Of a DNA stretch of 62,435 bases, positions 17,343-21,975 are shown one piece after another. The position numbers and the translations under genes were made by a program. How positions within the stretch are numbered: position 1 is the stretch's first letter; each line of letters begins with the position of its first letter. Below the pieces are notes generated by a model that did no database searches, was not told the DNA's origin, and saw only the letters and a program-made list of their open reading frames with translations. The stretch is from Orbicella franksi (lineage: Eukaryota), in NCBI GenBank assembly GCA_964199315.1, contig OZ116698.1, forward strand, positions 6,262,001 through 6,324,435. Reading direction: 5' to 3'.

Positions 17343-20300
17343 TTACTGGCGGCTTCTGACAATGAAATTTATCCACTTTCTATACTTTGACACCCTCGTG
17401 TAATACGCATACTTTCTTGGTCTTCCACAACCTTCGCTCCAACCAAACAGTCCAATTACAATCCAGCGGCCAGAGCGTGGCTGCTGCATGACGAGGGGGC
17501 TCCCCACGTCTCCAAAGCAGGGATCTTTTGGCTTCTTTTTGAAGCCCGCACACAACGTGGTTTCTTTGTCAAACGAATAAATTGAAGCTTCCTTGCATTC
17601 TTTATCCGGGACAATCGGGACTGTAACCTGTCTTAGTTCGGCAGACAAAGGTCCAGTAGGTTCACCGAGCCTGATTGCTTTAGTTGAACCCCATCCTGCC
17701 ACTGTACCAAACTGAAGTGGCTTTTCTAAAATCTTGTCTCGTTTCCGTTTTGGGACGCACACCTTCAATAAATTATCAGCAAAACTACTCATTTGGACTC
17801 AAGATTAATACGCTAATCTTTACAAAATAGTTAGTCTACAGTCGCATTCGGGCAAAGTTTGCTATAAATCTTCTTCAACGTTTCGAGTCCAGCGTTGGTA
17901 CGACACAGTAACCTTCATGATCAACAAGGCATTCGGGCTGCAAGTTGAGGGAGGTTTGTATCCTGATTTTAAAGGGTCCTAGTCAGCCACACCTTCGTTT
18001 TTATTTACATGCGAGAGTTTGGCTATTACATTTTATTCGGGGCATGTCGAAACGAAGGAAATCACTATGAAACTACTAGAGATAGTTAAACATACTTTCA
18101 GGAACACAACTTTTTACAGTAAAGCTATAAGGGTTCTCTGAACCATGCAACATCAATGATTTCGATGGGATCGGAAATGCCGGAGTTTGACTAGGGTCCT
18201 TAACACTCACCCATTTGGGCATTACACGATGCCCTGAAGTTTTTAATAAGTTTGAAGGTGCCCGTAACTATATATTCTTTTTTACTGTTTCATTTGTCAT
18301 TAACTGATAATGTTATCCTACCTCCAGAAATGTAGTGTTTTGATATGGATAGCGTGACTCTCCCCCTTAACTGAGCAGCAAGTACGCACACCCATGAGAC
18401 ACTGATCAATGCGCCTTGCAGTTAGAAGCGCCTTAATCTCGTGCTTTTACATAATAACAAAGAAAGAAAGCCAAGCAACAACAACAACAACGAGCTCACT
18501 TACCATCCTAATATGGTCATTAAGCCTAACGGGCTTCTCCAACTCTAACAGAGCGATATTATGGGCCATAGTAGTTCGGTCGTATCCCGGATGTAAAACG
18601 ATCCTTTTCACGGTGACTGGCGTTTCAGTACCGTCCAGTTTGTTACGGTTGAATTCACCTAATGATTCATAGAATAATTACAGGCTGTTGAACATCTTAA
18701 CTATTAAAGGGCCAACGAGGGGAAAAAAAATAGCGAATCAGCATGCATTTCTTGAGGAACAAGACGTATATAATACGGTAAGGGTTTTGGTTACGGTTAC
18801 ATGTACAATATGGTTGGGGCCAATTCCTACATTGTGATGATCGTCGCTTGATGAACGATTTAAAATTCACGGCGGAGTCTGGTTGATGCTGTCTGGAAAA
18901 ATGCCTTGAATTAATATTATCAATTTATTGAGCAAACATGATTTACGTACCTAATATCACTTGAAGTCTGTTGGGTTTTATGGGCGTTACGCCCTTTTTG
19001 ACTTGAAGAACGTTTGCTACTGTAAGAACCCACCCTGGTTTAACGAGCGCTCCGTTGAAGAGATAGCTTTTTCTTCCTAAAAGGTGAAAAAAAAAAAAAT
19101 AAATCTTTCATATTCAGGGAGCTTGTCTTACTGACCATGAACGGGTCTGAATGATTTTCATTAAGACGGTATAAAAAGACTGCTCACAGACGTTATGTCA
19201 AGAGATGACTAGAACTGATCTCCGCCCCGTATTCCAAGCACTTGCCCTCATTTAGATATAATTTTGCCAAAAAAAGTCATTTTACCTTGTAGGAACACTG
19301 CACTGTTTTTCATGCCGTTTGATTTAAGCTAAAATTTAAGTTGCACGAATCAGCCGCTACGTGTGTCAGTTCGAGATATTTTGAAAGCAAATTTTTAAAA
19401 TACCGCTAAAGAGCAGTTTTGGTCAACATTTTCTATACTTAAACCCGTTCGTTCCCCTATTCATAAACCTTCAGCCTTGAAAAAAGATGCTCCTTTAATT
19501 AGGACAGAACATCTCCATAAAGTCTGAAATAAAGAATGACTCCGGCTGGAGACGATGCATGAAAACAAGATCTAGAGGCAGCGTTGTTAACACAACTAGT
19601 ATATTTTGTTACGGTATTGTTTTCTTAGATGCGGTTGTAAGCATCAGGAATTACAATATATCTGTAATTTTATTTAAGCCGGCTTTAACGTCATGTATCC
19701 CCACTTCTGAAGCAAACGTCAAAAAGCCACAACGGGACCGCACAAGTCGAAGTCCATGACCTAGCTAACATTGTTGCGTGAAAGTGTCTTATAGAAACAA
19801 TAAATGAACATTTGTATCATTTCATTTGTGATTAAGAGATACCGCAGTCGAAATGCGGCAAAGATGATAAATGACATAAGCAGTAATACGCGTTTTTAAT
19901 CTCAAATACGAGATTAACAAAAACATACCCCCAAAAAAGGTATTAAGCCTCGTAACAGCTTACTGCCCGCAGTCTTTTGCCACACACATCTAAGCTACCG
20001 CAAAAATTCACCTACATGATGAACTCAGTTTATACGCCTAGTAATATGCTGACAGAAAAACCTTTCCAGTTATACCCATGCTCCTCTCCTTCACCCGAAT
20101 CTTCTAGTCTATCTATCTTCTATTTCTTGAAATTATTCATTAACGGACGGGAATCACTTAAAAGCCAGAATCAAAATGATCTTGGTGGGAGCGAGCGAAG
20201 CTTCATGCGTTTACTGGCTAATAGCTCCAAAGTGGAGTACATACTTGTGCTGTTGTAGCTGATGGCGACCTGCCAGGGCCAGGCTCCATAATCTGAGGAT

Positions 20301-21975
20301 ATCCCTCCCACAATCCGTCTGATGCGTGTCGCATTCTTTGAATTTCCCAGCGTACCACAAGTGTGCGGTGAAACTTTAGTCTTTTCTACACCAAAGTAAA
20401 CGATCTCAGTTACAGTTCTATTTACTCTAATAACAACTTACATAACACACTTAAGAGCCATACTTATATAAATTGATAGAAAGAGCTAGCTCAAACTGTT
20501 TCCCCCTGTTACGTAGGATAGTTTACTTTTGATTTATCGAAATAAACGAGCGATCTTCCTTTCTTTTCCAGACAGCCTTTCTTAAACGAAATCATGGGCT
20601 CCTGACAAAATAGGAAAATAATTTTCCCCTTTAAGTATCGCTTTACTTGGACGTTGACCAAAAACCTGCGGTGCACCAATACGGCTGCATTTCTCACAAA
20701 ACTTTTCAAGTTCACGGAAAAAAAAAAAAAAAAAAAAAGCAAAAAGAAACGGTTTCTCATTTATCCTCCCTTTGCTCTTTGTCACTTACTTCGGAACAGA
20801 GCAGCAACCATTCGGTATTTACTAGACAAGCATAACTTTCCATCGCCATGGTAACCCAGCTTGCACTTGCAGTGGAACGACCCAATGGTGTTGAAGCACG
20901 TGGCCTTCGCGTGACATAGATGATTGTGCTCGACCTGCACGTCATTGGTGGTGTAAGGGTTTTCGTAATCTTCGTATTCAATGCATTCGTTGATATCTGT
21001 ATGAAAAAGAGGGATTAACTCTATAACACCAGATTGGGAGCCAGAGCACAGCATCACGTAATCAGCAGTACAGCTATGTCACGCAATGGAAATGTCCACG
21101 CCTCAGCAAAACCGTAAACTAATAGCCAAGCTAAACAAGAGTTGAAAATTCTCAACTACTTTCATTGATCCACAATAGATCGGTTTGCGACCTTTATGAA
21201 AAGGTGAACCGCCATGGGAAGCTTATAAGCTTTACAGAACTGCCAAGGCGGTTTACCTTTGTGAAAGTTGACTTAGGGCACAGGTGTTTCACTTTCCCGT
21301 CTACTCACCAGTTTCTTTAAAAAGTAACAACTTTAATCTTACAGACTACAAAAGCGCTGCAGCATAATTGCTAGGAATAATTTTCAAATCTGATCAGCCA
21401 AATTATCTGTCTTTCAGGAGTTATTTCACATTGGATATACTGATGTTTTGGGACTATTTTCGTTTGTACCCTTTCCAAAATGGCGGACGTCAGAGAGAAC
21501 GCAATTGAGAACCTTTTCATCGCAAAACAATCCAAGCATTTGTAGTTGTTTTTGACGTTATATACTCTTCCTATTATGCAAAAGCATAGTCCAGTCGAAC
21601 TTATGTTCTTTTCGTTGAAGGGACCAACCAAAACAAACCTCAATGTGGATCAAGGAAGAGTCCTTAGTTTGCAAACAAATATGAGCATTCGTAAGCAAAT
21701 ACTCTTTACTTAAAAGTCAAACGTTTGCGATAAGTGCCACGTGCACACCATTGAGACATTTTGCTGTAGAGTAGTCTGCCAAACGTAATTACCTTCACAA
21801 GTTGGCAAGGTTCCACTCCATTTTTTATTCTGCTGACACTGTCGTAACCTGGTCCCTACGGTGAGTCTAAATCCCGGATTGCAAAAATATTCAACCTTGG
21901 CTTTGTAGTCGAAGTCTTCTCCCACACGGAAGCCATTCTTTGGGACACCAGGATCGTCGCATGTTTTTAATAGAG
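17343..21975 (-). CDS. Gene A: CCP + calcium-binding EGF + catalytically dead trypsin-like serine protease homologue; 5' exon(s) not identified
   Basis: Exons 21793-21975 (CCP), 20823-20996 (EGF_CA, DINEC...[10 protein letters not shown]), 20245-20385 (CG...RIRR|IVGG...WPWQV), 18951-19076 ([15 protein letters not shown]), 18504-18658 ([12 protein letters not shown]), 17343-17762 (GWG...[14 protein letters not shown]...W, stop). Splice phases join into one reading frame. Confidence 0.88.

Follow-up and report, generated by a model that had tools for sequence, protein, structure and literature searches.

A conserved cnidarian gene of the trypsin fold without the catalytic triad in the coral Orbicella franksi

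Known non-catalytic serine protease homologues and the coral gene

Pseudo-proteases are well known in vertebrates and arthropods, and one of them, PAMR1, combines EGF and complement control protein (CCP, or Sushi) modules with an inactive domain of the trypsin (S1) fold; we know of no characterised pseudo-protease in cnidarians. The gene described here lies on the minus strand of a 62,435-nucleotide stretch of the Orbicella franksi genome (contig OZ116698.1, positions 6,262,001 to 6,324,435; this whole stretch is called the window below) and encodes a CCP-EGF-S1 protein in which all three residues of the catalytic triad are replaced. The gene is transcribed and spliced, is held by purifying selection, and belongs to a family found across Cnidaria in which the cleavage motif and the residues of the zymogen switch are invariant. 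Its product is probably a secreted, cleavage-matured, non-catalytic protein that acts by binding.

Cleavage-matured S1 pseudo-proteases such as haptoglobin, HGF/MSP and protein Z serve as ligands, cofactors and scaffolds (PMC13194640), and haptoglobin acts purely by binding (PMC13194640, PMC6942865). In Nematostella, the survey of Babonis et al. 2019 in EvoDevo (PMC6767649, Additional file 4) lists the protein NVJ_98319 (JGI 98319) with the motifs TVANA / NIAL / DVGSP, marks it '*likely non catalytic', and scores it as having a signal peptide and no transmembrane segment; it is the sole one of 72 Nematostella trypsins without any triad residue. The coral gene was found to be its orthologue, with 60% identity over 368 aligned residues and a place in the same anthozoan clade (support 100/99), differing at position 189, which is Ala in the Nematostella protein and Asp in O. 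franksi. In that survey NVJ_98319 is a table entry only, given without function, conservation or expression and absent from the single-cell sheet, and a partial Nematostella model, P0160, bears the NCBI name 'coagulation factor IX isoform X2'. The inactivity of one member was therefore already flagged in 2019, while the age, the constraint and the conserved cleavage switch of the family appear to be new; a description of the family as such was not found in the literature searched by accessions and pipeline names.

Gene structure

The window is intron-rich and eukaryotic in character, with a GC content of 39%. A sequence-only reading had placed a pseudo-protease at 17343-20385, and this interval proved to hold exactly the four protease-domain exons on the minus strand, which are the last four of a 7-exon gene; three upstream exons of the same gene had been missed. 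The four exons all have AG acceptors, with GT at the three internal donors, intron phases of 1, 1 and 0 between them, and a frame unbroken to the stop. The whole coding sequence consists of 7 GT-AG exons (1326 nt, 441 aa) starting with the ATG at 26148, and the parts of the protein follow in the order signal peptide, Sushi, calcium-binding EGF and trypsin-fold domain.

Exon 1 (26055..26148) carries the start codon at 26148, a hydrophobic signal-peptide-like leader MTLPSHFLVFFFGLLALRAAEV... and a phase-1 GT donor; an in-frame stop lies upstream of its reading frame, and the N-terminus equals that of the RefSeq orthologue P0197. The Sushi/CCP domain is encoded by exon 2 (21793..21975; Pfam Sushi 4e-12) and the calcium-binding EGF by exon 3 (20790..20996; Pfam EGF_3 5e-12, EGF_CA 8e-09), which is symmetric (phase 1-1, 207 nt) so that its skipping preserves the frame. 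Exon 4 (20245..20385) holds a linker, the pro-peptide Cys171 (20359-20357), the N-glycosylation sequon NAT (20335-20327), the cleavage motif RIRR/IVGG (20326-20303; the slash marks the scissile bond) and the onset of the trypsin fold. It is followed by exon 5 (18951..19076), with the motif WVLTVANV, by exon 6 (18504..18658; Pfam Trypsin 5e-07), with AHNIALL, and by exon 7 (17343..17762; Pfam Trypsin 2e-22), which ends in the stop and encodes Cys122, a basic KRKRD, Asp189-Pro190, Gly193-Asp194-Val195, Gly214-Trp215-Ser216, Ala226 and a basic C-terminal helix. RNA depth continues from exon 7 into a partial 3' untranslated region (16750..17342), which extends past position 16750 in a 1340-nt contig; no AATAAA or ATTAAA was found within 16001-17342.

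Two side observations concern the EGF module. Between its first two cysteines (20982-20941) it contains an acidic, tyrosine-rich insert that robust corals, Pocilloporidae and Porites conserve, with weaker conservation in Acroporidae and anemones. The insert resembles a tyrosine-sulfation or hirudin-like motif. The S1 domain of this protein is very basic, and the insert might conceivably make contact with it or with an exosite of a partner. Isoforms without the EGF exon are assembled or annotated in Acropora cervicornis, Actinia, P0005 and P0159, and a shorter isoform of 408 aa (P0212) exists in Stylophora; among RNA reads mapped to the O. franksi gene, no junction skipping exon 3 rose above the listing threshold.

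Expression and splicing

RNA from four runs, namely two raw runs and the contigs of two other studies, was mapped to 16750-22700. The three predicted introns of the protease domain were spliced out at exactly the predicted sites, both in a raw poly(A) run (135 reads) and in the contigs of the two other studies. In all, five of the six introns were confirmed as spliced across three studies, with joints at 17762/18504, 18658/18951, 19076/20245, 20385/20790 and 20996/21793, the last of which is present in the raw reads and in both contig sets. The sixth intron (26055/21975) would be bounded by exon 1, given a loose read or contig end at 21981 that was seen in all three studies and uniquely matches 26061-26090 within that exon. 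The splice dinucleotides read CT..AC on the plus strand, which places the transcript on the minus strand. The only RNA depth within introns was that of a repeat at about 17944-18142, which draws reads from elsewhere, and a coverage of roughly one read at 19934-20132. The former segment, within intron 6, reaches a depth far over that of the flanking exons (contig word depth up to about 250) and is flanked by loose ends; it probably belongs to a dispersed repeat or transposon fragment whose transcription takes place at other sites.

Of the 441 residues of the predicted protein, 438 agree with XP_020615771 from Orbicella faveolata, the exceptions being V71A, H134Y and V220I, so that NCBI's independent annotation predicts the same protein, under the RefSeq name 'transmembrane protease serine 6-like isoform X1'. 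The alternatives found in the RNA reads are precisely these three residues of XP_020615771, together with two synonymous differences.

Loss of the active site and constraint on the gene

Chymotrypsin numbering was set in one alignment with active paralogues and outgroup proteases. In this frame the triad replacements that had been named from motifs were all borne out: His57 is replaced by Asn (AAC, 19014-19012), Asp102 by Asn (AAT, 18560-18558) and Ser195 by Val (GTG, 17507-17505). The disulfide between Cys42 and Cys58 is lost as claimed, since position 42 is not Cys and position 58, next to Asn57, is Val, and the clean reading frame with RIRR/IVGG, Asp189 (17525-17523) and Asp194 was likewise found, along with Pro190 and Gly193. 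The three catalytic losses sit in three separate exons, the reads over these codons show no variant, and the same losses occur in all coral and anemone orthologues, which together excludes both sequencing error and chance.

Pro190 is common to gene C, a Sushi-repeat serine protease of the window (46079-51400, plus strand) with an intact GDSGGP, whose motif reads GVGPCTGDSGGP. The shared layout noted before stood to this extent, but gene C, at only about 30% identity, is not closely related. Origin as a recent duplicate of gene C was rejected on that identity and because no close paralogue exists in the genome. A search of the 497-Mb genome with exon 7 gave 122 trypsin-domain matches, the closest of which are 38-48% identical; the gene is single-copy in O. 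franksi. GDSGG is kept in 10 of the 11 nearest paralogues, and Asp102 in all nine whose aligned exon reaches that position.

Selection was measured on a codon alignment that included mRNA contigs of six coral orthologues. For the protease-like domain, the nearest unsaturated pair gave dN 0.022 and dS 0.213, hence dN/dS 0.104, with 13 non-synonymous changes over 593 sites and 33 synonymous changes over 178 sites (binomial against neutrality, p=3.6e-12); more distant pairs gave 0.04-0.08 for the domain, with dS at or near saturation. Constraint was strongest in the protease-like domain and weakest in the leader. The comparison across coral orthologues that had been proposed as a check thus returned purifying selection (0.10 for the protease-like domain), and the gene is functional and not decaying. 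Intact triads in orthologues, neutral decay and absence of expression were each looked for, and none was observed: orthologues share the loss, the domain is constrained, and the gene is expressed.

A family across Cnidaria

To collect orthologues, exon 7 was used in an exhaustive phmmer search, and the database hits then served as queries in further searches, with cluster look-ups in addition. They were found in corals of the robust clade (Orbicella, Oculina, Desmophyllum, Pocillopora, Stylophora) and of the complex clade (Porites, Montipora, Acropora), in the sea anemones Actinia and Nematostella, in the scyphozoan Sanderia, and in the hydrozoans Hydra and Hydractinia; no family member from outside Cnidaria was among the best hits of the exhaustive search. 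In a maximum-likelihood tree of 19 family sequences and 14 active protease domains, the 19 form one clade (100/100), which divides into Anthozoa (100/99) and Medusozoa (100/97). Within Anthozoa, three anemone-type sequences group together (89/93), as do the corals (88/76), so that the topology roughly follows the species tree.

The residue losses run through the whole family. Position 57 is Asn or Ser and never His, position 195 is Val, Ile, Gly, Leu or His and never Ser, and neither position 42 nor position 58 is Cys in any of the 19. Position 102 is Asn in all 13 anthozoan sequences and Asp in all five medusozoan sequences that cover the site. By parsimony, a single loss in the cnidarian stem would account for each of His57, Ser195 and the 42-58 disulfide, and a later one on the anthozoan branch for Asp102. 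Position 214 is Gly or Ala in anthozoans, Ser214 being lost, and Gly193 is replaced by Ala in Actinia and by Arg in P0159. What all 19 retain is Ile or Val at 16, Gly19, Asp194, Gly196, Pro198, Cys122, Cys191 and Cys220, together with the cleavage motif R-x-R-R/[IV][IV][GE]G and the pairing of the pro-peptide Cys with Cys122. In a 17-sequence alignment (A1), the invariant positions comprise Arg at P4, P2 and P1, the pro-peptide Cys, Cys122, Asp194, Gly196, Pro198, Pro190 and a W-S-E-G-C block.

Some models of the family differ in length or number. The 90% cluster of the pseudo-protease includes two longer ones, P0215 from Pocillopora damicornis (992 aa, named 'CUB and sushi domain-containing protein 3-like') and P0233 from Porites lobata (1751 aa), both probably the result of a fusion to genes next to it. 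In P. damicornis, moreover, a single scaffold carries two distinct models (pdam_00009419 and pdam_00009421), perhaps through tandem duplication.

Cleavage site, pocket and surface charge

The R-x-R-R motif is a furin-type consensus, and its Arg residues at P4, P2 and P1 are invariant in the 17 aligned sequences, Cnidaria-wide. With a hydrophobic leader, this invariance and at least 10 convertase P-domain loci in the genome, maturation in the secretory pathway, as first proposed from the motif, is plausible. An N-x-S/T sequon lies 3-10 residues upstream of the cleavage site in every aligned sequence from corals to Hydra, and a glycan at this place could gate the access of the convertase.

The proposal of a matured, non-catalytic binder with a pocket for basic residues held only in part: the S1-fold domain without a triad belongs to a functional gene (spliced RNA, dN/dS 0.10), but the pocket did not survive comparison across the family. 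Asp occupies position 189 in the ten stony-coral sequences and in Actinia; the residue is Ala in Nematostella, in P0159 and in the four sequences of the hydrozoan branch, and Ser in the two of the Sanderia branch. In trypsin, Gly216 and Gly226 leave the S1 pocket open, and trypsin mutagenesis by Craik et al. in 1985 reportedly found that side chains at these two positions restrict the access of Arg and Lys. In the family, position 216 is Ser in all 19 sequences and position 226 is Ala or Ser in all 19, with Pro at 190 throughout. A basic S1 pocket as a conserved functional feature was rejected, since Asp189 varies and neither 216 nor 226 is Gly.

More striking than the pocket is the unusually basic character of the domain. 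The protease-like domain has a pI of 10.06 and a net charge of +23, the other anthozoan orthologues range from +20 to +35, and the 11 nearest paralogues in the genome lie between -9 and +3 over a span where the pseudo-protease has +14 to +27. Two stretches, KRKRD and the SKYRKW of the C-terminal helix, contribute part of this charge. In the HMMER alignment to thrombin, KRKRD falls right after Cys122 with an Arg at 126, and SKYRKW falls opposite FRLKKW, which contains Arg233, Lys235 and Lys236. Arg126 and the stretch Arg233/Lys235/Lys236 of thrombin are part of its heparin-binding exosite II. AlphaFold predicted a trypsin fold with a mean pLDDT of 67, with the lowest confidence at the cleavage site and in the activation domain, formed by the 142-152, 186 and 220 loops. 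Foldseek gave a TM score of 0.89 to the thrombin heavy chain and yielded only MASP and thrombin again.

Proposed mechanism and alternative explanations

In the mechanism that we favour, the precursor would enter the secretory pathway and be cut after R-x-R-R by a furin-type proprotein convertase. The new N-terminus, Ile16, would then insert and pair with Asp194 as in zymogen activation, so that the loops round the former active site become ordered, while a disulfide between the pro-peptide Cys and Cys122 would keep the CCP-EGF chain attached and yield a two-chain protein. This protein would bind rather than cut, through the ordered pseudo-active-site surface and the strongly cationic surface, part of which may be located where coagulation proteases have their heparin-binding exosite. 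The ligand is probably polyanionic, and the CCP and EGF modules may recruit protein partners. The family would thus keep zymogen cutting, the two-chain state and the Ile16-Asp194 rearrangement while catalysis was discarded; that the switch can persist without catalysis has a precedent in HGF/MSP, and for roles as a cofactor and as a scavenger there are protein Z and haptoglobin (PMC13194640, PMC6942865). Such conservation speaks for a long-standing and specific binding function for which the protein must be matured by proteolysis, and a secreted, cleavage-matured CCP-EGF-S1 protein acting by binding is the reading to which we give somewhat better than even chances.

Several points weigh against it. 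We infer secretion, convertase cleavage, the conformational switch, inactivity and the ligand alike. The signal peptide was judged by eye, with Nematostella NVJ_98319 scored positive for a signal peptide and negative for a transmembrane segment by Babonis et al. The R-x-R-R site could be cleaved equally by an extracellular trypsin-like protease, and an active paralogue, L011, likewise has RQRR/IVGG. The hydrozoan members are less cationic, at net +6 to +8, so that polyanion binding may be an anthozoan elaboration and not ancestral. The structure model is mediocre (pLDDT 67), and the placement of the basic patch follows from sequence alignment alone. Finally, the second raw RNA run had essentially no reads, which indicates that expression is not constitutive and is specific to a condition or tissue.

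A role within a protease cascade is unlikely but has a tangible chance of being correct. The protein would then be a non-catalytic regulator, a cofactor or competitor that shares CCP and EGF modules with active CCP-proteases and presents or sequesters their substrates, activators or inhibitors. Protein Z, the serine-protease homologues of arthropods and the MAp proteins derived from MASP are precedents for such a role. Cofactor and decoy pseudo-proteases are an established class (PMC13194640). The gene lies within a cluster of CCP-rich and CCP-serine-protease genes (gene C, and further proteases at 6.08-6.12 and 6.54 Mb of the same chromosome piece), its nearest solved relatives in both sequence and fold are thrombin and the CCP-CCP-SP fragments of MASP-1/MASP-3, and the retained zymogen-type cleavage site would permit it to be switched on along with the cascade. 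However, its identity to the neighbouring proteases is only 30-38% and it groups with none of them, and the Pfam lists contain no CUB, the module by which MASP and C1r attach to recognition molecules. Linkage tells a mixed story: in Stylophora a Sushi-rich gene lies directly downstream of the orthologue on the same strand, as in the window, so that linkage is conserved at least among robust corals, but in Hydra no protease gene is linked within 10 kb, where the only gene called is one for a mitochondrial RNA polymerase, so that linkage is not family-wide.

The basic surface admits a narrower version of the favoured mechanism, in which the fold is merely a scaffold for that surface and the protein is antimicrobial or opsonin-like, as azurocidin is. 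The pI of about 10 and the net charge of +20 to +35 in anthozoan orthologues, against about 0 in paralogues, speak for this, as do the replacements of His by Ser and of Ser by Gly in azurocidin, which recur in Hydra, Hydractinia and P0163. The lower charge in hydrozoans, where the rest of the domain is conserved, speaks against it, as do the lack of CCP and EGF modules in azurocidin and the absence of any expression link to infection in the literature searched by accession and pipeline names, and we regard this special case as rather doubtful. Residual catalysis by an unconventional nucleophile or mechanism is highly improbable: the O. franksi protein does keep Gly193 of the oxyanion hole, Asp194 and the site of activation cleavage, but His57 is absent from all members, Asp102 and Ser214 are lost in anthozoans as well, Gly193 itself is replaced in Actinia and P0159, and no conserved nucleophile is found at or beside the variable position 195. 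A recently dead or decaying pseudogene, or an artefact of assembly or annotation, might be imagined from the missing catalytic residues and disulfide, but the reading frame is open across all 7 exons, the splice sites are canonical, spliced mRNA comes from three independent studies, dN/dS is 0.10 (p=3.6e-12), the same losses occur in 19 sequences from Anthozoa and Medusozoa, and RefSeq independently models the same 441-aa protein; splicing, selection and conservation refute this explanation, whose probability is practically nil.

A bolder extension of the binding mechanism, which we consider quite unlikely as a whole, is that before the split of Anthozoa and Medusozoa cnidarians independently evolved a haptoglobin-like or azurocidin-like, convertase-armed two-chain effector, whose cationic S1 domain captures a polyanion and passes it to partners that bind the CCP and EGF modules. 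If so, the captured polyanion would be a microbial surface, a sulfated glycan or a damage signal, and the family would have served for more than half a billion years as the non-catalytic branch of an ancestral recognition system resembling complement, masked by 'active protease' annotations. Apart from this extension, the names TMPRSS6-like, PRSS33, protein C-like, elastase-1-like, prothrombin and factor IX that RefSeq and UniProt give to the family are wrong on both activity and architecture, and coral expression studies that list its members under these names as proteases will misread them. Orthologues in the genetically tractable Nematostella, Hydractinia and Hydra make the function directly testable.

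Neighbouring genes and other protease loci

The window holds a cluster of CCP-rich genes. On the same strand as the pseudo-protease, a gene with WAP and many Sushi modules lies downstream (429-10602), and upstream, also on the minus strand, lies a gene (33054-40824) that combines many Sushi modules with WAP-like exons and one exon of the F5/8 type C (discoidin) type. Runs of N occur at 8658-9005 and 48831-48959, the former flanked by a proline- and arginine-rich simple repeat, PSRLRAFA-like in translation (8463-9259).

Outside the window, 140-185 kb away, at least five active protease genes with GDSGGA stand in tandem (G000:C1:6077843-6121362; loci L004, L005, L006, L009 and L010). The last exons of L005 and L006, as aligned, have identical translations, pointing to a recent duplication or to a duplicate in the assembly. 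Another candidate pseudo-protease, unrelated to the first, was also noted in the genome (G000:C5:11679459-11679782; L003:1270-1818). It has Gly for Ser195 (GDGGSP), keeps Asp102 (NDIALV) and is similar to NVJ_137929 of Nematostella (TTAHC / DIAV / DGGSP), a protein that Babonis et al. likewise listed as 'likely non catalytic' (PMC6767649).

Comparison with known systems

The closest matches in sequence and fold are MASP-1 and MASP-3, covering the CCP and the protease domain (4kkd, E 7e-42; Foldseek E 5e-28). Like the coral protein, which is predicted to be extracellular, MASPs are modular extracellular S1 proteins, but they are active proteases with an intact triad and of the order CUB-EGF-CUB-CCP-CCP, whereas the coral protein has no CUB, one CCP and no triad. 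Membership of the MASP/C1r/C1s family was rejected because no CUB appears in any orthologue's Pfam list, Sushi is single and the triad is absent. The proteins lent by annotation pipelines, namely TMPRSS6, PRSS33, protein C, elastase-1 and prothrombin, share the trypsin fold at about 30-35% identity, but all are active and have other architectures, and their names, being best-hit transfers, are misleading for a pseudo-protease family. A type II transmembrane serine protease such as TMPRSS6 was rejected, given Sushi, EGF and Trypsin as the only domains, a leader of cleavable type, no internal anchor, no SEA/CUB/LDLa stem and no triad, and a homologue of the arthropod clip-domain proteins was rejected in that Sushi and EGF are the only Pfam families upstream of the trypsin domain. 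Nor does the gene belong to the PRSS23/PRSS35-like 'non-catalytic clade' of Babonis et al. 2019: that clade keeps TAAHC and the Asp, has its Ser motif replaced and carries no accessory domains, with NVJ_98319 marked separately (PMC6767649), whereas the present family has TVAN[VA] in place of TAAHC and carries Sushi and EGF.

Among pseudo-proteases, HGF and MSP resemble the coral protein in that cleavage at the zymogen site is needed and the pseudo-active-site forms the receptor-binding surface (PMC13194640), but they carry PAN and kringle modules instead of CCP and EGF, belong to vertebrate lineages and are unrelated beyond the fold. Azurocidin, or heparin-binding protein, is a strongly cationic S1 homologue with His changed to Ser and Ser to Gly (PMC6942865); it differs as a single-domain granule protein of vertebrate neutrophils, with neither CCP nor EGF and no two-chain form. 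Protein Z joins EGF modules to an inactive S1 domain (PMC13194640, PMC6942865). PAMR1 has a CUB and two CCPs, and protein Z has a Gla and two EGFs, so that neither order matches, and neither is a close relative in sequence.

Haptoglobin comes nearest in plan. In both proteins a CCP precedes an S1 domain without His57 and Ser195, and haptoglobin is made as one chain that is cut at an Arg before I-x-G-G and remains disulfide-linked (PMC13194640, PMC6942865). The coral protein differs in having an EGF between CCP and S1, a furin-type R-x-R-R and the further loss of Asp102, and haemoglobin, the ligand of haptoglobin, does not apply to it. The 60 best sequence matches in PDB were MASP, thrombin, TMPRSS6 and protein C and did not include haptoglobin; membership of the haptoglobin family was rejected, since these 60 matches show no such kinship and the clade of the coral protein is cnidarian only. 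The architecture and the probable logic are most like those of haptoglobin, with no sign of common descent. In conclusion, with the Pfam PF00089 fold, the replaced triad residues and a retained, functional gene, and with a predicted loss of activity and a putative convertase cleavage at its conserved R-x-[K/R]-R motif, the coral protein is an uncharacterised further member of the known class of S1 pseudo-proteases and not a new kind of system.

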